This document shows, one piece after another, positions 20,802-62,699 of a stretch of 64,000 nucleotides of DNA. The DNA lies in assembly GCF_006345805.1 (NCBI RefSeq), contig NC_043008.1, forward strand, positions 4,898,001 to 4,962,000, given 5' to 3'. The position numbers and the translations under genes are program-made. The stretch is from Octopus sinensis. Its lineage: Eukaryota. Numbering within the stretch: the stretch's first letter is position 1; each line of letters begins with the position of its first letter. The notes under the pieces are model-generated. The model was not told the DNA's origin, searched no databases, and saw only the letters and a list, made by a program, of their open reading frames with translations.

Positions 20802-21677
20802 ATGGCGATTTTGAAAGAGCTGTTGCTGTCAGCCCGACCTTGGTCTTTTTCGGCATCTATCGTCCCTAGTATTGTTGGGATAATCCTAACTAACCCCGAC
20901 CACAATCCGAGCATGTGCCTTATTTGTAACACATTATTCACTGTACTTTTAATTCACGCTGCTGGTAACCTGAACAACACCTTCTGCGATTTCATAAATG
21001 GTGTCGATCAGAAAGATTCTACACACGACCCGACCCTGACCGATGCCAAACTGACCAAAGACCAGCTGTTATCATTGCTAGCCGTTTGCTACATCGGCTC
21101 TCTCTTTTCACTCACTTTCACCGTTGTCCATTCCCCGGCTTCACATCTGTCCTTGATTGTTCTGTACAGTCTGGGAGTTGTTAGCAGTTTGATCTACACC
21201 AGTTGGATAGCCCTCAAATACAGGGCACTGGGCGATTTCCTGATCTTCTTAACTTTTGGGCCTTTAGTAACAGAGTTTTCTTACCTCAGCTGCAGCGGTT
21301 TCTTGTCCGGAAGGGCAGCAGTCCTCGTGCTGCCCCTGGCCACCAATGCGGTCGCCATACTCCACGCTAACAACATGAGAGACGAAGCAGCTGACAGGAA
21401 AGCAGCAATTCGCACTCTACCCATGCTACTTGGAAAGCACATTTCTCGCCAGCTGATGATAGGGCTGCTCTTTTCATCTTACATATTTTTTCTACTCATA
21501 ATCGCTTTCACATGTAACCTGCTCTTTGTTTTGCCGGCATTAACTGCATTTACTCTGGTTCCGCTTTACAAACGCATACAGGAATTTGACATGATCGGAC
21601 TTCCTGAGACACTAGCCAAACTTAATTTAGTACAAGGTTTGCTCTACTGTTTCACGCTTCTTTTCTCAAATATTTAA
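20802..21677 (+). CDS. Divergent UBIAD1-family (UbiA/MenA-type) prenyltransferase, copy A, 291 aa, intronless CDS
   Basis: RPWSFSAS, HAAGNLxNTxxDFxxGxD, KYRALGD..LTFGP, LHANNMRDxxxD..A.IRTL, AKLNL; multiple hydrophobic helices; intact ORF. Confidence 0.93.
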   Translation: MAILKELLLSARPWSFSASIVPSIVGIILTNPDHNPSMCLICNTLFTVLLIHAAGNLNNTFCDFINGVDQKDSTHDPTLTDAKLTKDQLLSLLAVCYIGSLFSLTFTVVHSPASHLSLIVLYSLGVVSSLIYTSWIALKYRALGDFLIFLTFGPLVTEFSYLSCSGFLSGRAAVLVLPLATNAVAILHANNMRDEAADRKAAIRTLPMLLGKHISRQLMIGLLFSSYIFFLLIIAFTCNLLFVLPALTAFTLVPLYKRIQEFDMIGLPETLAKLNLVQGLLYCFTLLFSNI

Positions 21678-28019: not shown

Positions 28020-30306
28020 TCTGGTGTCAAGGCCAAAAGACTGGCACCAAGAAAATAGTCAGCCAGCAGGTCTAAAGGAAAATATATTCCTAAGTGCAGA
28101 CTGAAGAATAAAGATTTTTGTTTGCAAGTGATGTTACAGGAGAGAAATGTGTTCGAATGGATGATGGTGCACTTGCTTTTAGTGATTCTGAAAAAGAAAG
28201 AGGTTTGGAGAAGCCATTATGAAAGACTGCTGAATGTGGAGAATGAATGGGAGGAGGAGAGCCCTCCAAATGTTGACCCAGTAGAGGGACCAGCTATCCC
28301 AGTAGACAGCTCCCTAGTAGTAAAAGCAATTAAGGGTATGAAGCCAGGAAAAGCCCCTGGCCCATCAGGAATCACTGATGAGATGCTTAAAGCATCTGGT
28401 GGTGTGGGCTATGGCCTAGTCACCCACATTATAAACCAGGTAGTACATAACGGAGTCATACCCAATGACTGGCATAGCAGCACCATAGTCAACTGCTACA
28501 AGGGTAAAAGTGATGCTCTAGATAGGAATAACTACAGGGGTATTAAACTGCTGGATCAGGTGATGAAGGTCACAGAGAGGGTCATAGTCCATCTCATTAG
28601 GGAGAGAGTCTGCTTAGATGAGATGCAGTTTGGTTTTGTTCCTGGTAGAAGCACCACTGATGCCATTTTCCTGGTTCAACAACTGCAGGAGAAGTACCTA
28701 GCTAAAGATAAACCCCTCTACATAGCTTTTGTGGACTTGGAGAAAGCCTTTGACAGGGTCCCCTCATCCCTTATCTGGTGGGCAATGCGGAAACTGGAGA
28801 TTGACGAACGGCTTAATAAGGGCTGTTCAGGCCCTATACAGAGAGGCCGTTAGTAAGGTTAAGATTGGCAACGAGCGTAGTGAAGAATTCCGGGTAGAAC
28901 TAGGGGTCCACCAAGGTTCAGCCCTTAGTCCTCTTCTATTTATTATAGTCCTCCAGGCAATAACAGAGAAATTCAAAATGGGTTGCCCCTGGGAGCTCCT
29001 CTATGCTGACAACCTCATAGCAGAATCACTACTGGAACTAGAAAAGAAATTTCGGGTGTGGAAGCTAGGTTTAGAATCAAAAGGCCTTAGAGTAAATGTA
29101 GCAAAGACCAAAGTTATAGTAAGCAGAAAGGCGAACTCATCACACACCGCCTCGGGCAGGTGGCCCTGCTCGATCTGTAGAAAAGGTGTAGGTAGAAACT
29201 CCATAAGATATACCCAGTGTAAGAGGTGCAGCAACATCAAAGGAAAATTAACTGAGAAGATAGTTTTCATGTGCGGCAGATGCACAGAGGCAATAGACAC
29301 CACAGATACTCAGAAAACATTCCATTACACTCCAGGGGGAGAAACTAGAAGTAGTTGATAGTTTCCACTACCTAGGTGACCAAGTTAGTAGTGGAGGTGG
29401 ATGCTCAGAGAGTGTCACCACTAGAATACGAATAGCCTGGGCAAAGTTTAGAAAGCTCCTACCCCTGCTGTTGACAAAAGGTCTCTCGCTCAGAGTGAAA
29501 GGTAGATTGTATGATGCATGTGTGCGACCCGCCATGCTTCACAGTAGTGAAACATGGGCTGTGACTGCAGAGGACATGCGTAGGCTTGAAAGAAATGAAG
29601 CTAACATGATCCACTGTCTGTGTAATGTCAGTGTGCACACACGACAGAGTGTAAGCACCCTGAAAGAAATGCTGGACATAAGAAGCATAAGATGTGGTGT
29701 GCAAGAGAGATGTTTGCGCTGGTATGGTCATGTACTGCGGATGGATGAGTAGAGCTGTGTGAAGAAGTGTCACTCCCAAACAGTTGAAGGTATCCGGGGG
29801 AGAGGTAGACCCAGGAAGACATGGGATGAGGTAGTCAAGCATGACCTTCGAACCTTGGGCCTCACAGAGGCAATGACGAAAGACCGAGATCTCTGGAGAT
29901 ATGCTGTGACTGCGAAGACCCGACAAGTAATGTAAGTTCAGGGCTACTTCATGCACCAGTTTTGCATAGCCACAGCCCATCCAATGTACCTTGGATCGCA
30001 AAACGACCTGCTGTGCTTACCTTGGAGCGTAGGGTGACCTGTCGTGCTTGAGGAGACCTATTGAGTCAAGTACATCAACATCAAAATAAATATCAAATGG
30101 AAATTGTAGTTATGATACCTGTGCCACTGGCACGTAAAAAGCACCCACTACACTCATGGAGTGGTTGGCATTAGGAAGGGCAACAAGATGTAGAATCACT
30201 GCCAGATCAGACTGGAGCCTGGTGCAGCTTCCTGGCTTCCCAGACCCTGGTCGAACTGTCCAACCCGTGCTAGCACAGAAAACGGATGTTAAACGATGAT
30301 GATGAT
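28020..30306 (+). mobile_element. 5'-truncated RTE LINE with most of the RT, 3'UTR and (GAT)n tail; decayed
   Basis: ORF pieces 28122-28853, 28729-29358 and 29471-29752 with KAPGPSG, NYRGIKLL, DLEKAFDRVP, QGSALSP, LLYAD, LHSSETW, LRWYGHV; frameshifts and stops. Confidence 0.93.
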
Positions 30307-32025: not shown

Positions 32026-33000
32026 ATCATCATCGTTTAACGCCTGTTTTCCATGCTGGCATGGGTTGGACGGTTCAACTGGGGTCTAGGAAGCCAGGAG
32101 GCTACACCAGGTCCTGATCTGACCAGGCAGTGTTTCTACAGCTGGAGGCCCTCCCTAACGCCAACCACTCCATAAGTGTAGTGGGTACTTTTTATATGTC
32201 ACTGGCACAGAGGCCAGAGGAGCTGGCATCGACCATGATCAGATGGTGCTTTTTACATGCCACCAACACGGAAGCCAGTCAAAGCAGCACTGGCATTGGC
32301 CACATTTGGATTGTGCTTTTTATGTGCTACCAGCATGGGGCTCACAACTACAATTTCCATTTGATTCGATTTTTATATTGCTGATGTTGATGTACTTGAC
32401 TCAATAGGTCTCCTCAAGCATAGCATGTCGCCCTACAATCCAAGGTACTTTTGAGTGGGCTGGTTATGTGACACTAGTGTAGGTTACAGCTGTGGACTCA
32501 CTTTATTTGTTTATTTGCAGGGTTTTCTCAGTCACAGCATACCTCCAGAGGCGTCAGTCTTTTGTCATTGCCTCTGTGTGGCCCAGCGTTTGAAGGTCAT
32601 GCTTCACCACCTCATCCCATGTCTTCCTGGGTCTCCCTCTACCCCGGATTCCTTCAACTGTTTGGGAGTGGCACTTCTTCACACAGCTCTACTCATCCAT
32701 CCACAGTACATGACCATACCAACAAAAACGTCTCTCTTGCATGCCACATCTGATACTTCTTATGTCTAACATTTCTCTCAGGGTGCTTACACTCTGTCGT
32801 CTGTGCACACTAACATTATACATCCATCGGATCATGCTAGCTTCATTTCTTTCAAGCCTACGCATATCCTCCGCAGTCAGGGTCCATGTTTCACTGCCGT
32901 GAAGTATGGCGGTTCGCACACATGCATCATACAATCTACCTTTCACTCTGAGCAAGAGGCCCATTGTCACCAGTAGGGGTAGAAGCTTTCTGAACCATGC
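32026..33000 (-). mobile_element. RTE LINE 3' fragment
   Basis: ORF 32689-32970 (RLYDACVRTAILHGSETW) plus 3'UTR and (GAT)n tail. Confidence 0.9.
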
Positions 33001-33479
33001 CCAGCCGCGAAGACAGGATTGGGGAGTGAGAGCTAGGCATTGAGTATGAAGGAGGAAATGTGAGGAAGAGGTCTAGAGACATCATCATCATTGTTTAACG
33101 TCCGCTTTCCATGCTAGCATGGGTTGGACTGAGGGCTGGCGAACCAGATGGCTGCACCAGGCTCAAATCTTGATTTGGCAGAGTTTCTACACTTGGATGC
33201 CCTTCCTAACGGCAACCACTGAGACGTAGATTGATTTGTTGGGGTAGGATGTAAGAAAAGTTTTCTTATGTGTGGGTGGAACACACAGATCAGGAACTAG
33301 CGGACAGCAATGATACAGTGAGACAGGATTTGTGAGTGGGAGGTAAGCATAGTGCATCAAGTGAAAATGTGAGGAAGAGAAGAGATGTAGTTTGGTTTGT
33401 TGTGGTAGAGTGTGTGAGAAGTTTTCTTGTTATGCTAGAATCAGTTTCACTGACATGGGTGGGTCTTCTCAAGAACCTC

Positions 33480-39193: not shown

Positions 39194-40138
39194 TCAGTGT
39201 TTTAGTGCCAATATACAAGCTATAACATAAAGAAGTCCAAAAATAAAATTCAACCGTGCCACTTTCCGAGGCAATTGTTCCAAGTGACGGTAACGAAAAT
39301 ATCTCTCCAATTTAAAGGATTCAAACACGGTTAAGAGAGGTAGAAAATACCATTTGGAATAATGCAGTCCCAAGTAGACAAAGGCAATGTAGGGCAGAAA
39401 TAAAAGCATCACGAACAATATGTAGGAGCCAGTATGGCCCAGCAGAATGGCTAAGGTAACAATCCCAGCATCCGTGTCACTTTCCATATGTCGAGTGTTA
39501 TTGCAATGAAGGACTGCTTCAGCACTGATAGCTAAAGGGATGGCATAAAAAATGGGTTCGTTCGATAGTTCACCGGTTTGTGAAAGAAAGGCGAACACGA
39601 CTGTAAGGGGACCAAAAGTGAGGAAGACTACCACGTCTCCGAGAGCAACGTACTTCAGTCCAAGACCACCAGTGTAAAGGAAACTTCCGGATAAACCTCC
39701 AAAGTAAATAAGGGCCAAGTGCTCCATGCGGGCAGGAGAAATATAGGCAAGCAACAAAAATCCACAGCATCCCAACACGTAGGACAACCCTCCCAGCCAA
39801 GCAATGTCACCCGGCATCAACACAGAATCGACCAATGTTTTGTGATTAGCATCTTTCTTTTTCTTGGTGTCGATTCCTCGAACATAATCGACGTAGGTGT
39901 TGACAAGGTTTCCAGCAGCATGGACAGAGAGGGCAGTGAGACAGGTGACCAAAGATATGAGAAGGCTAAATTCGGCATGCTCCATATAGGCAAGGGCGCT
40001 GCCTAAAGCAACTGGGGTGAAAGAGGATGTGAAAGACCATGGTCGAAGGGCTGCTAAGTATTTAGACAATTCCTGTGAAAGAGAAGTTTTCTTGACACGA
40101 CACTTGTTTCCTTCTTTAGCATGGCTATTGTTTTGCAT
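39194..40138 (-). CDS. UBIAD1: UBIAD1 prenyltransferase, conserved copy B, 314 aa, intronless CDS
   Basis: LRPWSF..FTPVALGSALAY, HAAGNLVNTY, EHLALIYFGGLSGSFLYTGGLGLKYVALGD, YAIPLA..EA.LH.NNTR, AGIVTLAILLG, ARLN; the true ATG is 40138 (the ORF track starts on a GTG at 40141). Confidence 0.96.
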   Translation of the reverse strand: MQNNSHAKEGNKCRVKKTSLSQELSKYLAALRPWSFTSSFTPVALGSALAYMEHAEFSLLISLVTCLTALSVHAAGNLVNTYVDYVRGIDTKKKKDANHKTLVDSVLMPGDIAWLGGLSYVLGCCGFLLLAYISPARMEHLALIYFGGLSGSFLYTGGLGLKYVALGDVVVFLTFGPLTVVFAFLSQTGELSNEPIFYAIPLAISAEAVLHCNNTRHMESDTDAGIVTLAILLGHTGSYILFVMLLFLPYIAFVYLGLHYSKWYFLPLLTVFESFKLERYFRYRHLEQLPRKVARLNFIFGLLYVIACILALKH

Positions 40139-40249
40139 CACTTCAGTATAATTTTCCAGTTGGTGTAAGGTCTTTCGACACGGTCTTCTTGAGGAGAGTC
40201 AGCACAAGCAACAGCGATGATGCTTCGCGAGAAACATACTAAATGACGG

Positions 40250-40438
40250 AGAGGACTACGAGTGATGGGTATATACAAAAATATGGAATGGGGAATAAAC
40301 GAAAAGCGAAAAGAAAAAATATATAATGTCAATTTAAATACTAAACGAGGCGAGGGAGAGAACTACAAGTGATGTGAATATATAAAAATATGGAATGGGG
40401 AATAAGTGAAACGAAAAATATAATGTCAATTTAAATAA
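40250..40438 (-). repeat. Imperfect tandem duplication of the 3' splice site upstream of UBIAD1-B
   Basis: Two ~85-bp units, each with a polypyrimidine tract and ATCACTYGTAG on the minus strand (AG at 40257/40256 and 40364/40363). Confidence 0.7.
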
Positions 40439-43400
40439 AATTGATAAATTAATAACGACAGCAATTGATCGCTAATTAAACAGATAAAAGATGTAATATT
40501 TATTATTATTAGAGTCAAATATAATTTTAAATATATTAATCACGAATTTGAGTAATTTTTAATGGAAGAGTCAACGCAGCGTGTTTGTATAATATATATA
40601 TGTGTGTGTATACGTATGTGTATCAATGTGTGTTTGTATGTCTGTGAAATGGGTGTGTATGTGAGAAACTCGCCGGATTGGTAAGATAAATTATATAAAT
40701 ATTTATAAGTATTTCTGATAATACGTTTATGTTTTATTTTTGTGTGCATGAGCGAATCTGTTCATTTATGTACATGGGCGTACGTGTGTGTGTGTGTGTG
40801 TGTGGTGTGTGTGCGCGCGATCCCATTCGCACATGAACAGTTTCTTACATACAAACACACCCACACATACATACACACACACACATATATATATATATAT
40901 ATCTAAATATATCTATATAGATATAGATATATTTATGTAGTAGTGTGTGTGTGTTTGCGCGCACACATATTTCTTTCAATATATTTAATATAATATGTGT
41001 AGCCTAATCTCGCGTAGCCGAGATCTTGAAGGCAGGAGTGTGTGTGACTTGCAGGCGAGATCTGCCATTCCTCTCCGCTGCAGGTAAACAAGGCAGCTGT
41101 GTGCGATGTGCCACATCCATCGAAGCCTTCCAACACAACCGCCTTCCCACTACAAACTTTAGTTAGCATTTCCTGGGGAATATTCAACTCAGATATGTTA
41201 ATTTGGACGACATGGCAGATCTTTAAGGTAAGCTGTTCTCTCATAACCGTTCCATCTTTCTCTTTTCTCCCATCTCTCGCCCTGTTCCCATTTCGAGATA
41301 ACAAGAACAAGAAGAAGAACATTATCAAAATATATTCAGACTCTTTTTCATGGCAAACGTTTAATCATTTCTTTTTACCATTTAGAAAGCAAGCCAGCAT
41401 TCATGGTGGTATTTCTCTTTATTCGTGCTGCATTCATTATTTTCGCTGATGTCTCAAGAAAAGAAAAGCTGAGGCATTTCGGAGAGAAAAACACTTTTTA
41501 TTAATGTTATCATCATCAGCATTATTATTATTTCATCTTTTCGGGGCACTGGTGTCGATGATATCCTCCTCCCCCAAAATTTTAGGCTTTCTGCCCAAAC
41601 TAGGAAGAATAATAAAAGAAACTATTATTATCAGGAATTGTTGCAAGTCTTTCCAATGTCTTTTTGGGTTACAAAAATTTAGGAACCACAAAAAAATCGA
41701 TCTCGTTGCTATTCCCTCGTCGTTTGCAGAGTCAAGATTCCTCCTTAAATTTTTCGCTGCTTGCTGCGGCTTTCACAGATGACTGACACTATATACATCC
41801 ACACACGCACACACACACACTATTATGCACTCGAAGAAGCCTGCTAGAAATAGCAGACAAATTCCCTTCAATCACACCCTACTGCATTCTTAAAAATACA
41901 GCCACATCAATGTAGTCCTGGATACGCTCTGACCAGTAAAAAAAAGAAAAAAGAATGCCTTTCATTATAGCCGTTTTCTAGTAGGGTTAATCTGAGAATA
42001 AACTACACACACACATATATATACATATACAGGAGTTCCTTGATGTGCTAGAAATAGCAGCCAAATTTCCCTCAAATTACTAATTTAAAAGAAAAATTAT
42101 ATCGGGACATTGTATTCCGAGTAATGCATCCCTGTATAGGGTCGTATTAGAGAAAAACCAGACTAAATTGTTACAGCTGAAATGCTTTTAATTATAGATG
42201 TGCCTTATCAATTTCTAACCTGGGGATTAAACAACACTCACACACACGTGTGTGTATGCGTGTCTATGTTCAGTGCTTCATTAAACCTGACATTCAAAGC
42301 ACCATCGGGGTCGGCTTTGCTTTTAATATGCAAGTGAACTAGAAGCAGCGGACTCCAGTAGCCTCATCTTTAACATAGTGTGTGGTATATCTATCCATCT
42401 ATCCCTCCCTCCCTCCACTTTTAACAGTGGTTTTGCTTCATCTTTCGGTAACAAAAACCGTACAAAAATCAAAACTCAGAATGCGAAAAATAAAAAACAT
42501 GTTGCAAATTAAATAATTATCATTATTTTGTCTATTTTTGAAAGTCTTCTTGAAAGACATAAATATCACTTTTTTCCCCCCTTTTTCTATAAATATGAGA
42601 CCTTTAACCCACACAAGAAATGATTTCTATAAACACACACACATCTCGTACAAGAATTTTCTGTTTGTGTTTTCGATTTCAAACTTTGAAATTTGAGTTT
42701 TATGTTACTTATTATGTCGGGGTTTAAGTGTTCCGTTTCATATCATTTCTTTTCACTAACGCCAGGCAGAACGGCGTAAACATCATCAACAATTCGCATA
42801 TCTCTCGCCCGTTTCTGAGATATTATGTTCATGTGAGAAATATTCCATTATGTTATGGCTTACAGATAGAACTGGTTGTCTGTGTACCTATCCACATACA
42901 TCATACATTTATATACATACTTGTATACAACATGCGATATATGTACTCCTACATAACACATTCACGCACTAATATAAATTATATGTGTGTTTTTGTGTAG
43001 ATATCGGTATGTATATATATATATGTCTATACAATTTAGATGTAAAATAATTTTATTGAATATATTTTCTCTTGTGGCTTAATTGTCTCCTCCTCATTCT
43101 CAGCGTAGTGAAAGTTTAAGCCTACATTGTAGAGACGAATAGTTCAAGAGAGGGTGTTAAGTCATGTACAAAAGATCTGTAAGGTCAGAATTGGCAGTAG
43201 ATTCAGTATAGGTAGGTATTCATCAAGGTTTTTATCTGATTCTTATTGCAGAATCTGTTGAAGAGCTGCAAGAAAGATTCTACATCTCGTAGAAAGATTT
43301 GGAATTGTTTAATAGGTAATATTGCAAAGTTCAAAACTAATTAATAACAGAACAACACAAAATATCGGTGGCAGGCAGAAAATGTCCTTGTTTTGTTTAA

Positions 43401-50142: not shown

Positions 50143-51068
50143 TTAAGGAAAGGGCAGGGTTACCATTTATAGTTTGAAAACCACTGCTATTGTTAACTAT
50201 AATCATATTCCAAAATGTTTATTGCCTTTGTGTCAATGTAATAAGTCCTTATTTTAATAGGAAGAGTTTAAAAAATTTGTAGTGTAATATCCGGATTCAT
50301 AGAATTGTGTGGCTATCAAAATCTTTTAGTGGACTTGGCTAACAGACCACATAGTAATCCACGTAAAGAAAAGTGTAATGATGCAAAGTGTCCATGCAGC
50401 TGAAATCCAGAAGATACAATTGTTGAAATTATTTCATGAGGAGTATATAAACCATAAAAAGTCAGGAAGTATGACAGGTGGATGTAGTTATTTAACCACT
50501 CAACATCCTTAAGGTTACAGCCATTTCGCAGCCGTCTTCATGTAATAATAATTTCAGTGTGGAATAAATAATGTCTGCACTGATGTGCACGCTGTGCATT
50601 ATACAATACAGTTATGTATTCATGAATTACTGCAGATAAAGAAAGCTAACTGCTCAGTGCACCAGAACATCATGGTGTAACCAATGATTCAACTCTCATA
50701 GTATGTGTGTGTGTGCACGATGAACTTTCACACTGTTTTTCTGTCAACCAAATTCACTTCAGGCATTGATCAGTTCATGCCTATAGCAGAAAACACTTGT
50801 CCAAGGCGCATGGGGTTGCAAGGTGAGCTTATTAACCACACAGCCATTCCTACACCTATCACACACAATGGATGTATAGTTGTGATATCATTAGGTGTTT
50901 CAATCATACTAAAATCACGCTGTTTTACTACCATGAAATTAGTGTTTTCCTGTTTAAAAATGTTTCTTATGCTGTTTAAGAATTTTTTTGTTTTTTTCTT
51001 ACAGATTAAACTGGATTGAAAAAAGAAGTTTGGGCAGTGCCTCTGTGTGGAGAGACAATTTTACCAAA

Positions 51069-51291
51069 ATGACATCCAAACATATAACTCCTTTTATCAC
51101 TGGCTTACGTAGCCGCAATGACGAAAGTCGACTGGCAACAGCCTACGAACTTTATCGTTATGTTAACACTGATGTTCCTGAGATGCCTTTAGATGACCAG
51201 AATGCATTCATTGATGAGATTAACCACAATGTCTTTGAGATGGTATCCAGTAGTGAAGTGCATGAAAAGAAAGGAGGAATTTTGGCCATTG
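51069..51291 (+). CDS. MTOR: mTOR first coding exon
   Basis: Acceptor ttacag at 51004, ccaaaATG; MTSKHITPFITGLRSRNDESR...INHNVFEMVSSSEVHEKKGGILAI G|gtgagc matches the mTOR N-terminal HEAT region (LKSRNEETR...HIFELVSSSDANERKGGILAI). Confidence 0.96.
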
Positions 51292-54200
51292 GTGAGCACA
51301 GTTGTCTCTTTAGTGTTTTAGTCATTCTTTTCCAAAATATTCATCTTAGATAACTTTCAAAAGAATTTTAGATATTTGTATGAATAATTTTGGCAGTGCT
51401 GCAGCATGGTCAGTAGTATTAGAGTAGTTCAAACTAATTTCTTTGGCATCCATATTCTTTACGAGACGATCGGTCTGGGATGTGACAGTGGGGCATCGTC
51501 TCCAGGGTGTAGACCTAGGTAAGATTGTTTGCAAGTACTTATGCAGCAGGTTTCCTCTCCTCAACAACTTCAGGTAGGGTATGGGGGGCAAGGGCTGATG
51601 AAGCTTAGCACCAGTTCCATTCTGGCTGGAGTTGCAGAATGGACTGCCTCAGGGGCTCCAGCTTCTCATTTATAATTGATTAAACTGACCGCAGTACTTG
51701 ATTGATTCTGGAAGCACGAAGGGTAAAGCTGATCTCAAAAGAATTTCACCCTTTAGCATCAGGATCACTCTGTCGTATGTAATACTTATTTATTTATGTT
51801 GTTTTGAATTAATCATGCATTATCTCATAGCTTCAAGACTTGGATGATTGTTTGTTTTCCGAATGACATTGTAGGGTCGGTGTGAGAGGCTGGATCTTGT
51901 CAGTTTGACCACAAAACATGTAGAATATTTGGGCTGAATATGGCTGGTTTAAATGCTAAAAGGTTAAACATAGAGCATCAATGTATTAGTACACTAAGGC
52001 TAAAATGCATCACATGATTAGTTGAAGGGAAAGATGAGGAGGAAAAGCAAGGAGTGAGAGAGTAGGGTGAAAGCAAAAGGAGAGAGAGAGAGGTGTCCTT
52101 GACGTGATGTAGGGAGAATGTAATATTTAACCTTTACTGTTTCAATTGGTGCAGTTTCTGATTCGTTTTCAAGTGCCCTGACCTGCTCCTCTTCATAAAA
52201 TCCATGTGTGTGACCCCCATCCCTTCTCCACAGCCCATTTATGCTTACCACCATTGTATCCCTCTCCCCTCCACTCTCCCTCACATACCTACCTGCACAC
52301 AATGTCCCTGTTCAATCCCTTCCCCACAACATAATCCAAATACCTTGTTCCTCTACCACTGCCCACTCATTACATCCTCCCTTTTAGCTCCCACTCTCCA
52401 GTCAATCTTGTGAACTCCCTCACCCTCTCCAATCACTGTAACTTGGGTGTTGGGGGGGGCTGCCCCTCTTTGTCACGTCTTCATTTTTCTCTCCTATCTC
52501 ACTCTCTGAGTTATCTATGTTTTTATTCTAATGCAAAACATCTTTTCTGTCCCTCAGTACTACTCCTCCCCCACTCCAGTTGAGGGGGTCTTGTCCTGCA
52601 AGTTATATGATGATCTCATGGCTGCTGGTGCCACATAAAAGGCACCCAGTTAAGTGGTTTGTGTCAGGAAGGACATCCAGCCATAGAAACCATGCAAAAG
52701 CAGGCAGCAGAGCTTGGTGCAGTTTTCTGACTTAACAGTTCCTGTCAAACCTTCCTCAATATGCCAACATAGGAAATAGATGCTAAATAAAAATGGTGAT
52801 TTACATATGTATACTAGCAGCTAAGCCCAGTTTCACACAGTCTGTTTTGGGTAATGTGGCTGTGATTGTTTTCAGTTAGGCATAATCTATAACAGTGTTT
52901 CTCAACCTTATCATTTCGGGGCCCCTGTTTCGATTAGAGCCTCCAGCTGTATGAAAATTTCCTGACTCCTCCCACCCACCCCGGTCAGAAAACAGTTTCA
53001 GGAGTTGTGAAGAACAAATTTGTACATAGTCTGTTTGTGAGAGCTATACTATTGGACCTCTGTCTAATCATTAAAATATTGATTTAATTATGAACATAGA
53101 AAAAAATTATACATTAATCCCTATTTTTGTAAGCAGTTGTATCCATAAAACTTTTATTTGCAGAGAGCAGAAATTGAAAGAAGATACATGAAATGGACGT
53201 GTGTGTGTGCGTGTTCATCATATAAAATTTTTACGATAACTGATTTATGAAAAAGATTGTTAAATTTTTGAAATGCAAATATTTGAATGAAAATTAAGTT
53301 CAGACCTCTACATGGTAGAAATAGCAGCCAAATCTCCCCCACTGTCTCCATCCGACAATTCTACCTATTATATAGTTTGAATGAGAAGCTGTAACTAAAG
53401 ATTAAGATTATTAACCCCACAAAGAGGTGAAAGAAGAGAGACAGCATAGCGAAAGTTTTGACTGATTGTCATCCTGTACTCCCCTTGTTGCTAGCGAAAT
53501 GGTATATGCCGGCTGTGTGAGCAACTGGTTGTTTTAATGGTAGAACAAATAAGAGAATTCCATAAGAAAAAGTTTTAATCGATTTTCTCGGTAACTATGG
53601 GGGCTAGGAAAAAAATACAAACCGCATTCCAATCTATGCACCTGTCCCCACATGTGTGCTATTTTTCACGCGAATCCACCCAGCCATTTGACTGTGAACC
53701 TCAAGACAAGAAAGAATACAATGCTAGCCCATGTCCAATATAATCATCTTCATCATGATCCTTTAACATCCATTTTCCATGCTGGCATGGGTTGCATGGT
53801 TTGACAGCAGCTGGCCAGACTCCCATTGTTCATTGTACCATGGTTTCTACAGCTGGATGCTCTTCCTAACACCAACCACTTTACAAAGTGTGCTGGGTTT
53901 CTTTATGTGCCTCTGGCATAGGTTTCTTCTACATAACACTGGCACAAGTGCATTTTCTGTGGCACCAGCACTTGTAAAGGACAAGTCTATATGTGTGAAA
54001 GACAATGATTTGACTTGGCTTCTCAAGTACAGCAAATCACTGCAACTCTCGGTCCCCTGTCATTTCTTCAGTCTGAATAACCACACATGCGCACGTACAC
54101 ACATGAATGCAACACCATAGCCTAGTGGTTATGGTGTTGTATCTGTGACTACAAGACATGGTTTCAATTCCCAAACTGGCAACCTTATTCAAAAGCTTCA

Positions 54201-54338
54201 ACGTTGCAAGGAAGTGCATTGTTACCAGCAGTATATAGTATCTCATCTGGTTCATAGATACACACACACGCACTGACACATGTACACACAGGCAGGCAAT
54301 ACACATACACAGACAGCCAGACAGAGAGACACAGACAT

Positions 54339-54378
<40 letters not shown>

Positions 54379-56030
54379 TCAGACAGACAGACTCACTGAC
54401 TCTCTCTCTCTTGCACACACACACACACATATATGCATGCACCCCTTATTCTAGATTTATTCTCCACATCTTTAATTCTGTTGCAGGATTTCAATATCTC
54501 TACACTATTAGTTCTCTTGCCAATTCTGAATTATGTTGAACAGAAAAACACAAGAGAAAAGTAGTCTGTAAAATAAATTTAAATGTTCTCCCCCTTTCTT
54601 CCCCCCCCCTCTCATTTCAACTTTCCTTTAACAATTGGAACTAAAGTACATCCATACAGACATATACAACTCATAGCTTCCTGATGACAATTATGATTTC
54701 TCCTAGACATACTTAAGAGATCTGCCATGTGCTACTACTGTTTCACTTTGACTCACATTTTCTGTTAAACACAAAAAAGGAAAAAAATATTTCCCCAAAA
54801 TAGATTGACATGGCATTTTGTGTGAGCAAACTTTTTCTTTTTTTTTTTCAGTCTATTGGACTGAGAGAGAGCATCTGAACACTATTGTGTAATGTTTGAA
54901 TTATTAATTTTTATAATTTATAGATTTGACCTTTTAAATGTAGGACTTAGATTCACTTCAAATGAGTTAAACTCTTTCAACCACTGACTTTTTATCTAAA
55001 GATATTGGTTTTGTTGATAGGAAAAGCAAAAGGTCTGTGGAGGACATCATTGTCTCGCTGTATGCAGGCTTCCAAGTTAATATTACTTAACATTTTAATG
55101 TCCACTTTTCTATTCCTGCATGGATCAGGCAGAATTTGTTCAAATTTTCTACAGTCGGCAGCTCTTTTTCTTGCCAACCCTCACCTGTTGAGAAGCCAGT
55201 TAATATTTTTTCATAGCCAGGCATGTTTTGATGGAAGATTGGAAATGAAGGTTACTGTTTGTAGGAGGATGACACTCCATATGACTATCATATGATGTTA
55301 AGAGAAGGGGACACACACACACATCTACCTACCAGCCAACTCACTCCTATCGCAAAGCTTTGGTTGATCTAAGGCCATAATAGAAGTCATTTGCCTGCCA
55401 TGTGGTTGGGAAACCAACTTCTGAACCCCTGTGCCAAGTCACTGCCTAACCAAAATCACAATGTGTGATTTTATTTATGCAGGCACAAGATAAGGCTTAA
55501 GCAGTGCATTTTACAATCTTGGGATCAATCCCACTAGCAGGTATCTTCTGCTATAGCCTTAGTAGCTCTGTTTGTAGAATTGGACAGTGTGTCTGAGAGT
55601 TGTGTTAATGATACGTGTATCTGTAGTGTACCTTTAGCATTCATATTAGTCTATCAAATGTAATATTTATTTAATGATCTTTTTTTTTTCTTTCTCCTGG
55701 CTGTAAATTTTGGTCTGAAAAATTTGGCCATTTTTACATATGCAGCCACACAAGGATAAGATGATCTAGTATTTAAAAAAATTTTTTGATGCTTAAAGCT
55801 GTTGTAAAGAAATTGTCCTAGTGTATGGAAGTCCTGAAAATAGTTGTTTGAAATCACATTGATGCTAAATTGCAATCAGTGCTGGTTTGAATCACATCAG
55901 CAGGAGTCACCAATTTTAATTCTGTGGTTTATAGTGTAAGAATATAGTTGCACATATCATGACAATTATATTGCATAACTCTTAAATCAATAATTGCACT
56001 TGATAATTAAAAAAAAAATTTATTTACTAG

Positions 56031-56191
56031 TGCAGGAGTGGCTGTGTGGAAAGAAGCTTGCTTCCCAACCACATGGTTCCAGGTTCAGTCCCACTGCATG
56101 GCATCTTGGGCAAGTGTCTTCTACAATAGCCCCAGGCTGACCAAAGCCTTGTGAGTGGATTTGATAGACAGAAACTGAAAGAAGCCCATTG

Positions 56192-56226
<35 letters not shown>

Positions 56227-56390
56227 CTGTGTGTGTGTTTGTTCCCCCCACCATCGCTTGACAATCGATGTTGCATGTTTACATCCCCATAACTTAACGC
56301 TTACAAAGAATAAGTCCTGTTATCGATTTATTTGACTAAAGGCAGTGCTCCAGCATGGCAACAGTTAAATGACTGAAACAAGTAAAAAAA
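56031..56390 (+). mobile_element. tRNA-derived SINE, near full length, in the mTOR intron
   Basis: gcaggagtggctgtgtgg..gcttgcttcccaaccacatggttcc..ggttcagtcccactgc ... gactgaaacaagtaaaa. Confidence 0.9.
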
Positions 56391-59300
56391 AAATAGCAAA
56401 GTTAAGATGGAAAGTTGGCAGAAACATTAACACATCAGACATTTCTTGAGGCTCTTTACATTCTAGGTTCAAATCCTGTCACGGTCAACTTTCCCTTTCA
56501 CCCTTTCATTCAATAAAATAAAGTACCTGTCAAGTACTTGGTCAATGTCATCAACTAGCCCCCACCTCTTTGCTTGGTCTTATCTTTTGTTTCACTCATT
56601 GGTTTTCAGTCATGCTGGGGCACCATCTTGAAATGTTTAGTTGAAGGAATCAGCCCCAGTTTTTTACTTTTTTAAGTTTGGTATTTATTCTGTCGATCCC
56701 TTTTATCAACTGGTTGTTAAGTGGTGGTGGTGGGGATAAACATATTCACATGTACATACATATATAAATATATATGATGGGCTTCTTTCAGTTTCCATCT
56801 ACCAAATCCACTCACAAGGCTTTGATCAACCTAGGGCTGTCCAAAGTACCATGCAGTGGAACTGAACCCAAAACCATGTTATTGGGAAGCAACCGAAATT
56901 TGATACAATTAACAGAGGTGTGTGTGTTGTGTGGTGATCAGCAACATTAATGGTTTACTGTAATGTTGATCAGACTTGTTGGAATCACATAAATGAAAGT
57001 GATGTGAAATGTGGTGATAAACTGTGTCCAAAGTCCTCACCATTGTGTGTAAACTGTGTCTGTGATGTTTAAATCGTCATAAAACAGTGGTCATAATGTT
57101 GAACATTCAGAAAGTATGTTTTCAAGTTGATTAACACAAGTGACAGTCCAGTCTGTTTTTGTTATCGACTCACAGTATCAGCTCCACAAACTGTGTAGGG
57201 CATTGACTGTATAGTGTGATGAATGGATCAGTCGTTCAATGATGAGGATTTGGTTGAGCAAATCCTCGTGTCGAAGTGACTGACCAATCCACACACATCT
57301 TTTATTATCTTTTACTTGTTTCCATCATTGGACTGTGGCCATGCTGAAGGGTTTAGTCAAACAAATTGACTCCAGTGCTTATTTTAAGCCTGGTACTAAT
57401 TCTAATGTTCTCTTTTGCTGAACTGCTATGTTACAAGGATGTAATCAAACCAACACCAGTTGTCAAGTGATGTGTGTGGTGAGGGCAAACATACATAATT
57501 GTGTGTGTGTAAGAGAGGCTTCTAGACAGTTTCCATCTACCCAATTCACTCATGAGACATTGGTCAGCCTGGGTCTATAGCAGAAGGTGCTTGCCCAAGG
57601 GGACTGAACCTGAAACCATGTGGTTGCAAAGCTTTTTAACCCCACAGCCAGCCATGTGTACTCTTACAATCAGCATGGCATAGTGTGGGACAATGCCAGG
57701 TGCTGTCACTCAGTAGGCTTCTTTACAGTTTCTTTCAACCCAGTTTCCTATAGCCAAAGCTATAGGAAATGACATTTTCCCAAAATACAACACAATGGGA
57801 GCAAACTTGAGTTCATGTGCTGGTAACTGCACCTACAATGTGTAATGTTTCTGGCTACTGATTAATCTATAGAGAAGTATTACAGCTTCATAAATGTGAA
57901 ATTGTTGGTTCATTGTATGTCACGGAAAGATAACCTCATAGTGCTATAGACTACTTCAGAGACAGTTTGTAAAGAAACTGTAAGAGACTGTATACAGTTT
58001 CTTTTATAATATCGTAAGTAGCTTAGGTACTGGATGAACTAAAGAATGATCTTTCGTTAAGTTAGTTCATATATATAGTGAACAGTCACAAGTTCCACTT
58101 CAGTGGAAGCAAGAAATTTACTGGTTCAATGCAGAACATGGCACTAGCAACAAACAATTTTCAAAGAAATGTTTGGTATGAAGTTTCTGTTTGTTGGTTA
58201 GAGTTGATGTAGGACTTTTGGTATACTGTAGAAAGATTGACTAAAGTGTTGAGTGTGGAATGGAAGAAGGCAAATTATAGCCATCAAGACTTTCTGGTTA
58301 TCTGCATTGGTCTAATCCTTTAGCATCCAATTTAATTTGTCAAACATAATACTTATTTTGAATTAATCATGCATTATCTCATAGCTTTGAGGTTTTGATG
58401 TGATTGTTTATTTTTAGCAATGACATTGTAGGGTAAGTATGAGAGGCTGGATGGGGCCAGTTTGAATGTAAATCAAGGAGAATATTTGGGCTAGATGTGC
58501 TTGGTTTAAATGCTAAAGGTTCAAGCAAGCATGGACAGCATTTTTTGAGAAGCAGGCCACATGAGATATGGCTCATCATCAGGTGGGCTGTACTACTAAA
58601 AAAAAAATTCAGGGTAATGTTTTGTTAGGCTTTCCATTCAGAAAGTTGCATAGGATGCGCTTTGCCTGTGGCTGGTCTAAATAATGCACTGCCTTATACT
58701 GTAGTTGCGATTGATGGAAATAGTTTTTATTGAAGCATTGCTTTCACAACTGAACAGCCATCCTATTGCTATCTACTCAACTATGAAGTAGGAATGGAGA
58801 CTGTCTTTTTGTTTAGTTATTCAAGCTCATGGGCCCAACACAATGCTGGTAGGGCCATGCATTCAGTAGTGCATCACCATAACCTCACAGCCATTTATTG
58901 CTGCTGGGCAATATTTTCATATATTATTGAATGTGAGGAGAATGTTATTGAGATGATGTCAAAGTGTATCCTTTTCCTGTACCCTTTATGGGAATGGGGT
59001 TCATGCTTTCGAATATGATCAGATATCTTCAATGTTTCTGTTTAATAAACATTGTGTGAAATGATTGTAAATATATCCTATTTCAATTTTTAAAAAAATT
59101 AAAATTTGAATAACAGTAGTTTCTAATTATAAATATTGAATTGTTGCATTTGAGAGGGTTTAGTAATTTCAAAACGGATTCTTTTATTTTCTGGCATGTA
59201 AGTCAGTGCAGTGTATAGTGCAAACATGTAGTGTAGACAGTCAAACTTTGTCACTATCTTTCCGAATCCTGCTGCAGTTCACATGAAGTTTTTGGTTCTT

Positions 59301-59971
59301 CAAAGTCATTTTGGTACATAGGTCAACCTACCTTGTTTGGCTGTAAATTTTGGTTTGAAAAATTCAACTTGTATGCAAGAAAATAGAGTAATTTTTTTTC
59401 TTAATTTAGCTTAAGTGTTAGATTGATTAAATGTTAAGATTTGTTCAATGCAGTTTCTTTAACCAAGTTTTCTCTCAATTTCTCTTTTCATGTGCCATGT
59501 CCTCAGGTATCAGTAATCATAGACTTCCATGCCAAAGTCTGAAGATGCATGATTTTTTCTTGGAAAAGATACATGAATGTTTTTTATAGCCTTCTTCCAG
59601 TCTATTTATAATTTACTCCGCTAGTCTCTTGTTCCCCTAAGCTAACCCTTGACGTTCAGGACCTAAACTTTAGAAAAGGGAACAGGTTCATGTGACTTCA
59701 GGACAATACTCTCACTAGCGGGCCTGTGTGACACATGTCTGAAAGTTAGTCCTACGCTAAGTGCTGTATGGTTTAGCCATAGGATCTTTATGCGATTTGA
59801 CTCCTAGCTGGTGTCCTTGGCAGGTTGCAGCACCTCTTGTCAAAATGCCCTTGGGAGTAGTGGTGACAAAGGGGCTAGTCTAGCCTCCCTGAAACTCGTA
59901 AGCTGGAGCCTCATCACCAAATGCTGTTTAATGTCCCTTAACCCCTCAGCTTAAAGAAGTTAAAAACTAGT

Positions 59972-59987
59972 GGGGTGGGTGGGTGGG
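59972..59987 (+). other. Canonical G-quadruplex-forming motif
   Basis: GGGGTGGGTGGGTGGG: four G-tracts with 1-nt loops. Confidence 0.6.
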
Positions 59988-61375
59988 TAAGACAGATTGA
60001 TGGAATTCAGCTGCAGAGATTTCTAAGTAGAACAGTAAAAAAACTGTATGTCTAAAGATTGTTGGAATGTTATACTAGACATTAATGTTTACAATATTTT
60101 CATTGGCCTCTCTCTCTCTTTCTCTGTCTCTCTCATCTTTAATTGCCACCCAGTGTCTAAGATTATTGTGTGCAGACAGTACATGTGTATCTGATTAAAT
60201 TGTATTTTTAATAAAATTCCATTACTTACTGAATATAGACATGGAATGTTGTATATTTCTCCCCGAAATAGCCAGCTACTACAAAGCACATAACTATTTT
60301 CATGTGACATCATTACACATGGCATATTTTATGAAAGTTACTGAAATGCAATTGTGTTTATTGGTTGAACCATTCAGATTACTCTGTCGAACATAATGCT
60401 TATTTATTCATGTTGTTTTCAATTAACCAAGTATAATCTCTTAGTTTCAAGGCTTTGATGGTGTAATTGTTTTTAGAATGACATTGTAGGGTAGGTGTGA
60501 GAGGCCAGATCTGACTTGTTTCAACATAGAATATTTATTTCTTTACTACCCACAAGGGGCTAAACATAGAGGGGACAAACAAGGACAGACAAAGGTATTA
60601 AGTCAATTACATTGACCCCAGTGCACAACTGGTACTTAATTTATCGACCCCCGAAAGGATGAAAGGCAAAGTCGACCTTGGCGGAATTTGAACTCAGAGC
60701 ATTTGTGCTGGTGCCACATAAAAGCATTCATGCCAATGCCATGTAGAGAGCATCCAGTACACTCTGTAAAGTGGTTGGTGTTAGGAAGGGGCTCCAACCA
60801 TAGAAACCATCCCAAAACAGACAAATAGTTTGGGCAGCTCTCCAGTTGGCCACCTCTTGTCAAACTATCCAAATCATGCCAGTGCGGAGAACAGATGCCA
60901 GTTGATGAAATGTGCAGATGTTTATTTTTATACTTGTGAGAAGAGAGGCTGTACCCATTACCATTGTGGCTCCTCCCCAGCCACACCCCAGACTGATAAC
61001 ATTGGTATGGCTGATACTCAACCTGAACATCTGTAGAAAATGCTTCCAACAGTGAACTCCACAAAAGCCACACAAAGCTATCTGAGTGGTTTGTAAACTG
61101 GGCAACAGATTTGGTCAATGACCCAGAGTAGATAACTTGAAGAAAAAGAATAGTTTTACCTGTGAACAAATCATGAAAATGAGAATATGGAACTTCATTT
61201 TAAAGGTGCAGGTGTGTTTGTGTGGTAAGAAATTTGCTTCCCAACCACATGCTTCTAGAGTCAGTCCCATTGCGTGACACCTTGCGCATGTTTTCTCCTA
61301 GTTTGTGTCTGTGTGTGTCTAAATGAAAAGTATATATAATATATATGTGTGTGTGTGTGTATGCATATATATATC

Positions 61376-61920
61376 AACATCATCGTTTAACATCCGTTTT
61401 CCATGCTGGCATGGGTTGGACGGTTTGTCTGGGGTCTGGGAAGTCAGGAGGCTGCACCAGGCCCCCATCTGATCTGGCAGTGTTTCTACAGCTGGATGCC
61501 CTTCCTAACGCCAACTACTCTGATAGTATAGTGGGTGCTTTCTACGTGCCACCAGCACAAGGGGCCAGAAAAGCTGGCTTCAACCACGTTTGGATGGTGC
61601 TTTTTATGTGCCACCGGAACAGAAGCCAGTCAAGGCGGCACTGGCATCGGTCACATTCAGATGATGCTTTTTACATGCTACCAGCATGGGGCTCACAACT
61701 ACAATTTCCATCTGATTTGATTTTGATATTGCTGATGTCTCCTCAAGCATGGCATGTTGATCCAAGGTACTTTTCAGTGGGCTGGTTATGCGACACTGGT
61801 GTAGGTTACAGCTGTGGACTCACTTTATTTGCCTGGTCCTCTCAGTCACAGCATAACTCCAGAGGTCTTGGTCTTTGGTCATTGCCTCCATGAGGCCCAA
61901 CGTTTGAAGGTCATGCATCA
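61376..61920 (-). mobile_element. RTE LINE 3'UTR/tail
   Basis: catcatcgtttaacatccgttttccatgctggcatggg... continuing to the C-terminal MHDLQTLGLMEAMTKDQDLW. Confidence 0.9.
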
Positions 61921-62198
61921 CCATATATATATATATATATATACACACACAACTATTTGACAAATGGTCTTTGGTTTGTTTATGTCTCTTGTAACTTACT
62001 GGTTTAGCAAAAAAGATCAAGAGAATAAATACCAGGCTTCAGAAACCAAAGTACTGGGGTTGGTTCATTCGATTAGAATTTCTTCAAGACAGAGCCCTAG
62101 CATAGCTACATTCTAACGGGTGAAGCAAGAAAAAGACGAAACTGATTTCACTGATTTGTTGTAAATTAATAATGGTGTAAAATGTCTTTCTTTTACAG

Positions 62199-62434
62199 CT
62201 ACCCTCGTTGGTGTTGATATTGGAAATGCAGCTACAAAAATTAGCCGTTTCGCTAATTACTTGAGAAACCTTGTTCCATCCAGTGATGTTGGCTTGATGG
62301 AAATGACAGCTAAAGGGATGGGCATATTAGCTCTGTCTGCTGGTAACCACGCTGCTGAGTATGTGGACTTTGAGACGAAGAGATCTCTGGAACTTTTAGC
62401 TGGTGAAAGACATGAAGGCCAACGTTATTCAGCC
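62199..62434 (+). CDS. MTOR: mTOR second coding exon
   Basis: ttttacag|CT: (A)TLVGVDIGNAATKISRFANYLRNLVPSSDVGLMEMTAK...AEYVDFETKRSLELLAGERHEGQRYSA|gtaagt; phase-1 join with exon 51069-51291; the gene continues beyond the window. Confidence 0.96.
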
Positions 62435-62699
62435 GTAAGTAAACACGCATGCATCACACACACACACACACATACAATGACATATACCCTTGATAATAAA
62501 TGGTGTCTGCCTGCGTGAAGAATGGTGTGTATTTGCAACTGGGAAGCAGCAGCATTATATATTGCAGGTTTTTGTGAGCAACAGTTATAAAGTTGGTGCA
62601 AAAGAAACATCACAGGGAACCTCAGTTGGGGGACAGGGCTAAGTTTTCTGTTTTGTCACTAATATTCATTGCCAAAAGATACACATGTACATATGTATA

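Follow-up and report, generated by a model that had tools for sequence, protein, structure and literature searches.

UBIAD1 of the coleoid cephalopods, as represented by a gene of Octopus sinensis, carries a histidine (His) in place of the aspartate (Asp) that begins the second Asp-rich motif, at a residue (D236 in human numbering) that is otherwise near-invariant from bacteria to mammals. The gene, referred to here as copy 1, lies in a stretch of 64,000 nucleotides (contig NC_043008.1, positions 4,898,001 to 4,962,000) that was analysed as a whole and is termed the window. The two Asp-rich motifs are regarded as defining and essential for the UbiA-family membrane prenyltransferases, and D236 is also a position of human disease. 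Copy 1 is read here as a functional coleoid UBIAD1 orthologue with a retuned cap and second-metal site, and not as a dead enzyme, a reading that we give about an even chance of being right. The parts of copy 1 on which the argument turns are located in the window as follows.

39194..40138, minus strand: copy 1, the UBIAD1 orthologue of Octopus sinensis, a complete single-exon coding sequence of 314 codons plus TGA
39869..39901, minus strand: first Asp-rich motif, intact, N80-TYV-D84-YVRGI-D90 (NTYVDYVRGID; human N102, D106 and D112)
39839..39868, minus strand: remodelled L2-3 cap loop, TKKKKDANHK, with S116K, D117K, a three-residue insertion and R119K
39476..39490, minus strand: second Asp-rich motif, non-canonical, H217-M-E-S-D221 (human D236-M-E-S-D240), with the His codon CAT at 39490-39488

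Homology, fold and phylogenetic position all place copy 1 in the UBIAD1 orthologous group. Its reading frame on the minus strand is unbroken over 314 amino acids, as checked in the window, which corresponds to O. sinensis chromosome CM016870.1 (100% identity over 20,945 nt to locus L010) and is about 99% identical to O. vulgaris. The protein matches the Pfam family UbiA (PF01040) over residues 41-278 (E=8.4e-30; 104.3 bits, the cut-off being 34.2) and, by HMMER, the cryo-electron microscopy chain of hamster UBIAD1, PDB 8djk_B, over residues 19-311 (E=2.9e-95). The AlphaFold 2 (AF2) model, for which 64 homologues served as input, has a predicted local distance difference test score (pLDDT) of 89.7 and a predicted template modelling score of 0.88, with values of pLDDT below 50 solely at the N-terminus and at residues 95-99. 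In Foldseek the model is closest to 8djk_B (template modelling (TM) score 0.88, root-mean-square deviation 2.6 Å), followed by DGGGPS, AfUbiA and ApUbiA, and the two methods together give the all-helical UbiA fold of nine transmembrane helices with a cytosolic cap formed by L2-3, L4-5 and Hx6-7. An earlier note on this DNA, made from the letters alone, had expected a structurally conserved protein, and in this it was right. In a neighbour-joining (NJ) tree copy 1 is nested among mollusc UBIAD1 proteins, and the coleoid copy-1 clade has a bootstrap value of 100%. By its sequence copy 1 can at the same time be classed as a non-canonical variant, as it departs from two invariant family signatures, DxxxD and KKSDDR.

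Residues are numbered as in the human protein, the register being set from the positions of Schnyder corneal dystrophy (SCD) on 8djk_B, where DDRTLVD is 117-123 and RDMESD is 235-240; this numbering is self-consistent. The HMESD that the earlier note reported in place of DMESD is present in the window, and its His aligns with D236 of hamster NNTRD236MESD240; positions 118, 119 and 236 are, as was also claimed, SCD positions in the literature. The distribution of this residue was obtained from MAFFT alignments of 128 close homologues and of 248 homologues that include protist and bacterial MenA-like proteins. Of the 116 non-coleoid UBIAD1 clusters, 114 have Asp at position 236 (Asn in the other 2), as do 116 of 116 alignable distant protist and bacterial relatives, which amounts to 230 of 232 outside the coleoids with Asn in the remaining two; all 12 coleoid copy-1 sequences have His, a contrast well past anything that chance would produce. 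Free variation of the residue among invertebrate orthologues, which the earlier note had named as a finding that would undo its case, is excluded by these counts.

His at position 236 is carried by O. sinensis, O. vulgaris (P0001, P0122), O. bimaculoides (P0121) and another Octopus-like species (P0123), by Argonauta hians (P0002, 89% identity to copy 1), and by two deeper lineages, P0003 (78% identity) and P0004 (76%), which were recovered from Logan read assemblies; P0003 is present in 161 sample blocks of these. Several of the copy-1 read-assembly contigs share a 5′ end that begins in adapter remnants, and are in this respect cDNA-like. Judging from their depth of divergence, with a nonsynonymous divergence (dN) to Octopus of 0.15 as against 0.07 for Argonauta, P0003 and P0004 are presumably decapodiform lineages. 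Octopus, P0003 and P0004 encode this His by CAT, and Argonauta encodes it by CAC. D236H is real because the same His recurs in several genomes and in many independent read assemblies, and an assembly error, also named in the earlier note, is ruled out by this recurrence in O. vulgaris, O. bimaculoides, Argonauta and the Logan assemblies together with the 100% identity of the window with CM016870.1. The substitution is best described as one clade-wide Asp-to-His change that has been kept by purifying selection. The literature search found no paper on cephalopod UBIAD1. As a separate observation, the O. vulgaris annotation P0122 (CAI9730830.1) is a 282-amino-acid product that diverges from the open reading frame (ORF) after ...GLHYSK (compare window 39194-39370); it ends in an unrelated 24-amino-acid tail and lacks the last two helices, and may be a splice variant or an annotation artefact.

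Asp236 has also been replaced outside the coleoids. An independent UBIAD1 lineage has D236N in 19 of 19 sequences (P0029, P0034 and the cluster members P0395-P0411), within the motif NN[ST]RNM[AE]SD; its L2-3 loop is the canonical KKSDDRTLVD, and the NJ tree places it near the leech Helobdella. The lineage shows that Asp236 is replaceable in nature.

The second departure of copy 1 from the family lies in the L2-3 loop. The invariant UBIAD1 signature K-K-S-D-D-R-T-L-V-D is absent and KKKKDANHKTLVD stands in its place, within GIDTKKKKDANHKTLVD as read from the window at 39877-39827 (minus strand), so that the loop is 3 residues longer than that of hamster 8djk_B. The earlier note had described here a three-residue insertion with D117N, D118H and R119K. 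The insertion and R119K stand, whereas D117N and D118H hinge on where the gap is put and are not confirmed, since HMMER and MAFFT alike align the loop with S116K, D117K, Asp at 118, an inserted A-N-H and R119K; D118 is probably retained in coleoid copy 1. Outside the coleoids S116, D117 and R119 are 98-99% invariant, and in all coleoid copy-1 sequences they are Lys. The His of the loop is not conserved, being absent in P0004/P0127 (KKKKGDGGSSNK; KKKKGDGGSSNKTLVLVD) and displaced in P0003 (KKKKDAASHNNK; KKKKDAASHNNKTLVLVD). The proposal of two independent Asp-to-His changes therefore reduces to the single D236H, and with the loop His goes the new metal site that the pair, as the note allowed, might form. 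The L2-3 insertion is predicted by AF2 to be disordered (pLDDT <50, residues 95-99). From D112 to D123 the net charge is +2 in 8 of 8 coleoid copy-1 sequences, compared with a mean of -1.3 (range -3 to 0) in 116 other animals, and D236H removes one further negative charge.

When a coleoid-specific column is defined as one in which a residue at least 90% conserved in the 116 non-coleoid sequences is never found in coleoid copy 1, there are eight such columns (K74, S116K, D117K, R119K, I190V, L223I/V, T225A and D236H), and four of these (116, 117, 119 and 236) sit in the cap. Columns that are at least 97% conserved elsewhere are intact in 72 of 78 cases. Among the polar active-site residues 13 of 14 are unchanged, namely N99, N102, D106, D112, Y174, T175, K181, Y182, D187, N232, N233, R235 and D240, with N102, D106 and D112 of the first motif (NDxxDxxxD in the superfamily, N102xxxD106xxxxxD112 in UBIAD1) invariant in every group compared. 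Because these remaining residues are unchanged, the radical changes of copy 1 are concentrated in two elements of the cap, the L2-3 loop and the first part of Hx6-7. In mammals TM2-4 of UBIAD1 bind TM5/TM7 of HMGCR and are released by GGPP; of the contact residues known from the hamster complex, V101, E158 and F172 are kept in copy 1 as well, with K156R. The ratio of nonsynonymous to synonymous divergence (dN/dS, Nei-Gojobori) of copy 1 is 0.10 between O. sinensis and O. bimaculoides, 0.04 between O. sinensis and Argonauta, 0.08 between O. sinensis and P0003, and 0.06 between P0003 and P0004, the synonymous component (dS) being saturated at the greater depths. Copy 1 thus displays neither the loss of several catalytic residues nor the relaxed active-site constraint by which a pseudoenzyme is recognized.

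What the loss of this Asp may mean for catalysis can be gauged from published work on related enzymes. In the archaeal enzyme AfUbiA two Mg2+ ions are held by N68/D72 of the first motif and D198/D202 of the second, and the second Mg2+ lies 3.5-4.0 Å from the diphosphate (PMC4106721). D236 is homologous to D198, a ligand of this second Mg2+ (PMC4106721), and, as the earlier note had it, the second motif begins with this Asp. In AfUbiA the dissociation constant (Kd) for geranyl diphosphate (GPP) rises 45-fold in D198A and 21-fold in D202A, and binding is lost altogether in the four further mutants that were examined, those of the first motif among them (PMC4106721). Microsomes with human UBIAD1 D236A synthesize the menaquinones MK-2, MK-3 and MK-4 at levels similar to or above those of the wild type, activity is lost in D112A, K181A and Y182A, and it is reduced in the SCD mutants N102S, D112G, R119G, T175I and N232S (PMC4398444). 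Because human D236A is active and AfUbiA D198A still binds GPP, loss of the D236 carboxylate alone would not kill the enzyme. L2-3 and Hx6-7 belong to a cap domain by which the active site is covered when substrate binds (PMC9314443). All 21 SCD mutants tested stabilise HMGCR in Chinese hamster ovary cells (PMC6668851), and mammalian cap mutations, the conservative D236E among them, trap UBIAD1 on HMGCR (PMC9314443, PMC6668851). The earlier statement that mutants at these SCD positions lose activity and keep HMGCR stabilised holds in its second half and for the lowered activity of R119G, and its first half does not hold for the laboratory mutant D236A. The tolerance of D236A, the limited rise in Kd of D198A, the 13 kept polar residues and the dN/dS of 0.04-0.10 also tell against the suggestion that copy 1 is catalytically dead.

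Copy 1 is not the only UBIAD1 gene in the window. A second and more divergent gene, referred to as copy 2, is found on the opposite strand.

20802..21677, plus strand: copy 2, a divergent UBIAD1 paralogue of 291 amino acids, an intact single exon, convergent with copy 1 and 17.5 kb downstream of it

The second motif of copy 2 is canonical (NNMRD194EAAD198, with GAC at 21381-21383). The protein matches Pfam UbiA at 4e-27 and 8djk_B at 1.3e-41, is 37% identical to copy 1, and exists as an exact entry in NCBI for O. sinensis (P0412) and as XP_052828030.1 in O. bimaculoides; the same tandem pair is found in O. bimaculoides (L014) and in Argonauta (L012). Copy 2 evolves faster than copy 1, with an Octopus-Argonauta identity of 68-69% versus 89% and a dN/dS of 0.18-0.29. 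It retains 45-48 of the 78 family-invariant columns, yet none of the 14 polar active-site residues, D236 and D240 among them, has been lost. Its losses include G177W and G179A and, in octopods, also V101N, E158L and F172L; V101 and E158 are retained in copy 2 of the non-octopod lineage.

An exhaustive profile search for copy 2 over 1.84 billion representatives returned one further cluster, P0249/P0393, at 282 bits compared with about 200 bits for ordinary UBIAD1; it is 45% identical to octopod copy 2, with an NJ bootstrap of 100%. P0393 co-occurs with the copy-1 sequence P0003 in sample ERR3431203, and both copies are therefore older than the split of the two coleoid lineages. A recent, octopod-only duplication is ruled out by these orthologues in a non-octopod copy-1 sample. 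T225A is found in 14 of 14 coleoid copy-1 and copy-2 sequences and in 3 of 116 others, which together with the tandem position suggests that the duplication took place in the cephalopod lineage before D236H. Copy-2 read-assembly contigs terminate in A-runs and are cDNA-like.

The NJ tree groups copy 2 with short long-branch proteins (P0250, P0253, P0256 and P0135). This placement is distrusted because the copy-2 profile scores P0250-type proteins no better than canonical UBIAD1, and long-branch attraction is likely. These four proteins are UBIAD1-like, about 290-300 amino acids long and without the N-terminal extension, and near the C-terminus they share with coleoid copy 2 the sequence PQE[TC]A instead of PQ[RK]xA; they may be an older short-form paralogue family, or the likeness may reflect convergence and long-branch attraction. 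Copy 2 of the non-octopod lineage (P0393/P0249; L036-L044 and L020-L025) has a 12-residue acidic Ser-rich insertion in L2-3, DKQVKANDEEKSESSSGDITLTD, and the cap loop has therefore been altered in both paralogues, in opposite directions of charge.

On its upstream side copy 1 adjoins a gene with which UBIAD1 is also associated in other octopods.

51051..62443, plus strand: mTOR exons, upstream of copy 1 and head-to-head with it (tblastn with Argonauta mTOR-side ORF pieces; matches 51051-51320 and 62198-62443)

In O. bimaculoides and Argonauta the neighbour of UBIAD1 encodes the domains mTOR_dom, FAT, FRB, PI3_PI4_kinase and FATC (L014:1-4867 and L012:1-3968), so that the mTOR-UBIAD1 adjacency is seen in all three octopod genomes examined, O. 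sinensis being the third. Human UBIAD1 presumably adjoins MTOR as well. Between the two genes, a direct duplication of about 100 bp (window 40230-40400, minus strand; ccattccatattttt..tcacttgtagt..) lies close to the start of copy 1 on its upstream side, after which follows sequence rich in (CA)n/(TA)n microsatellites (window 40540-40940). Dispersed repeat copies of 84-90% identity, probably those of an interspersed element, occur in the UBIAD1 intergenic region and at other places in the window (29437-29921, 32511-33004, 61372-61738 and 3365-3647), as secondary blastn matches of L010.

The reading of copy 1 as a retuned but functional prenyltransferase follows from the intact first motif and catalytic residues, the very low dN/dS and the tolerance of D236A. 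The substrate-gating cap would have been remodelled once, before the octopods and the other, presumably decapod, coleoid lineage parted, and then maintained by purifying selection. Where Hx6-7 begins, D236, the ligand of a second Mg2+ that is only weakly bound, has given way to His, and in L2-3 the residues S116, D117 and R119 have become Lys with the insertion of 3-8 residues. Taken together the two changes turn an acidic segment into a basic one, by about +3 to +4 charge units. The prenyl diphosphate would still be bound, and the prenyl group transferred, by way of N102/D106/D112 together with K181, Y174, N232, N233, R235 and D240, and the diphosphate may be held partly by direct contacts with His and three to five lysines instead of the second Mg2+. 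The expected outcome would be an altered dependence on Mg2+, an altered affinity for geranylgeranyl diphosphate (GGPP) and altered closure or dynamics of the cap. Copy 2, with its DxxxD, would already have been present and may have made D236H permissible. The conservation of the residues, the location of the changes together in the cap and the shift in charge are observed; from these, and from the published mutants, we infer the contact of His and Lys with the diphosphate and the retained activity.

Several points weigh against this reading. The conservation of D236 over so wide a range of organisms is itself one of them. Conservative D236E is pathogenic in humans, and the residue therefore matters for something that the in vitro D236A assay misses. 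His is a poor ligand of Mg2+. A protein that does nothing but sense GGPP would need the residues conserved in copy 1 as well, so that they are no proof of catalysis, and the retention by copy 2 of every catalytic residue despite heavy divergence would fit copy 2 as the main enzyme.

The last two points lead to the strongest rival explanation, which is close to what the earlier note proposed and which we consider possible on balance, though somewhat unlikely. Here the tandem duplication was followed by a division of labour in which copy 2 acts as the prenyltransferase, while copy 1, its catalysis impaired, senses prenyl diphosphates or has a regulatory role; it might, for instance, bind HMGCR more tightly or regardless of GGPP. 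The constitutive HMGCR binder of the earlier note extrapolates from mammals, and gains a little indirect plausibility from the DxxxD kept by copy 2. In all data collected, His at 236 is found only in the clade that also holds a D236-bearing paralogue, both copies being present in octopods and in the non-octopod sample, and the shared T225A suggests that the duplication came first. Copy 2 has also kept its 14 polar active-site residues while about 40% of the family-invariant columns were lost, mammalian cap and active-site mutants are trapped on HMGCR, and copy 1 keeps its HMGCR contacts. These contacts, however, are conserved across animal UBIAD1 and hence are not diagnostic, non-octopod copy 2 also has V101 and E158, and the regulation of HMGCR by UBIAD1 has been shown in mammals only. 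A literature search for evidence of absent sterol synthesis in cephalopods brought no usable support. The activity of human D236A (PMC4398444) and the D236N lineage, in which Asp is replaced beside a canonical loop, do not favour an impaired copy 1, nor does the retention at very low dN/dS of the acceptor-side and catalytic residues Y174, T175, K181 and Y182. A broader formulation, in which two UBIAD1 roles are split such that the fast copy keeps the Mg2+/DxxxD chemistry and the slow orthologue would act as a prenyltransferase that is metal-independent or uses an alternative metal, or as a sensor of isoprenoid diphosphates, is likewise on the doubtful side, at around one part in four of our confidence.

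It is improbable, in our estimate, that His236 serves as a switch of metal or pH, whereby His236 with D240 and N232/N233 would bind a softer ion (Mn2+, Co2+ or Zn2+) or form a pH-titratable gate in an enzyme that is active with another cofactor. The strict conservation of His despite a synonymous codon change is in keeping with such a role, as are the D240, N232 and N233 retained nearby and the Cd2+ that the equivalent archaeal site can hold (PDB 4tq6). The second His once proposed in the loop is not conserved, however, there are no further gains of His or Cys among the eight coleoid-specific changes, and the accompanying lysines suit direct binding of an anion better than binding of a metal. 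Very improbable indeed is the explanation that the His is an artefact or belongs to a non-functional gene, be it through an error of assembly or sequencing, a pseudogene or retrocopy, or a codon that is edited back to Asp. Coleoids do edit their mRNA heavily, yet adenosine-to-inosine editing turns CAU into CGU (Arg) and never into GAU, and restoration of Asp is thus ruled out by the genetic code. The coding sequence of copy 1 is intronless, yet the UBIAD1 of the limpet Patella is likewise single-exon, and this orthologue, the mTOR neighbour in three octopod genomes and the low dN/dS of an intact ORF rule out a dispersed retrocopy or pseudogene. Four annotated genomes and hundreds of read assemblies made independently of one another moreover agree on the His, and some of these assemblies have cDNA-like adapter or poly(A) ends.

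D236H by itself overturns nothing, as the published D236A results had given a hint that the enzyme can do without this Asp in vitro, and these results temper what would otherwise be a surprise to the specialist, the clade-wide loss of a near-universal motif residue at a disease position. It would nonetheless appear that His has stood at the first Asp of the second motif across an animal clade for hundreds of millions of years, and that it is accompanied by a compensating basic cap loop. The coleoids therefore provide a natural experiment on the role of the second metal site, be it in catalysis, in substrate affinity, or in GGPP sensing and cap closure, and the pair of paralogues might allow the catalytic and the regulatory roles of UBIAD1 to be separated. 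If the roles were indeed split, no natural UbiA-family member before copy 1 would have been shown to function with the second Asp-rich motif missing. As matters stand, the evidence points to altered handling of GGPP or metal, possibly with a partition of roles between the two paralogues.

The known system that copy 1 most resembles is mammalian UBIAD1 (human, and hamster 8DJK/8DJM), a menaquinone-4 synthase that prenylates menadione with GGPP in dependence on Mg2+ and a GGPP-regulated partner of HMGCR, to which it is about 52% identical with a TM score of 0.88. The two are alike in N102/D106/D112, K181, Y174, T175, Y182, D187, N232, N233, R235 and D240 and in the HMGCR-contact residues V101, E158 and F172. 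Copy 1 differs in having His for D236, in the loss of K74, in an L2-3 loop that is basic (KKKK...K) and 3 residues longer where the mammalian protein has KKSDDR, and in the existence of a divergent second tandem copy. The archaeal enzymes AfUbiA (4TQ3) and ApUbiA (4OD5) share with copy 1 the nine-helix fold (TM 0.6-0.7) and the two-motif architecture; they are 14-17% identical to it and have a canonical DxxxD, and loss of the corresponding Asp is known in AfUbiA only as the engineered D198A. The human SCD alleles D236E, D118G and R119G and the laboratory mutant D236A alter the same cap-domain positions as are altered in coleoids. The human SCD alleles, however, are single, heterozygous and pathogenic changes in a canonical background, whereas the coleoid set is fixed, coordinated and under purifying selection, and probably leaves D118 unaltered. 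The plant 'non-canonical' UbiA prenyltransferases were rejected as a precedent for the motif, since the term refers there to reverse prenylation. Also comparable is the D236N lineage (P0029, P0034), in which the same Asp has been replaced naturally, by Asn and not by His, in an otherwise canonical UBIAD1.

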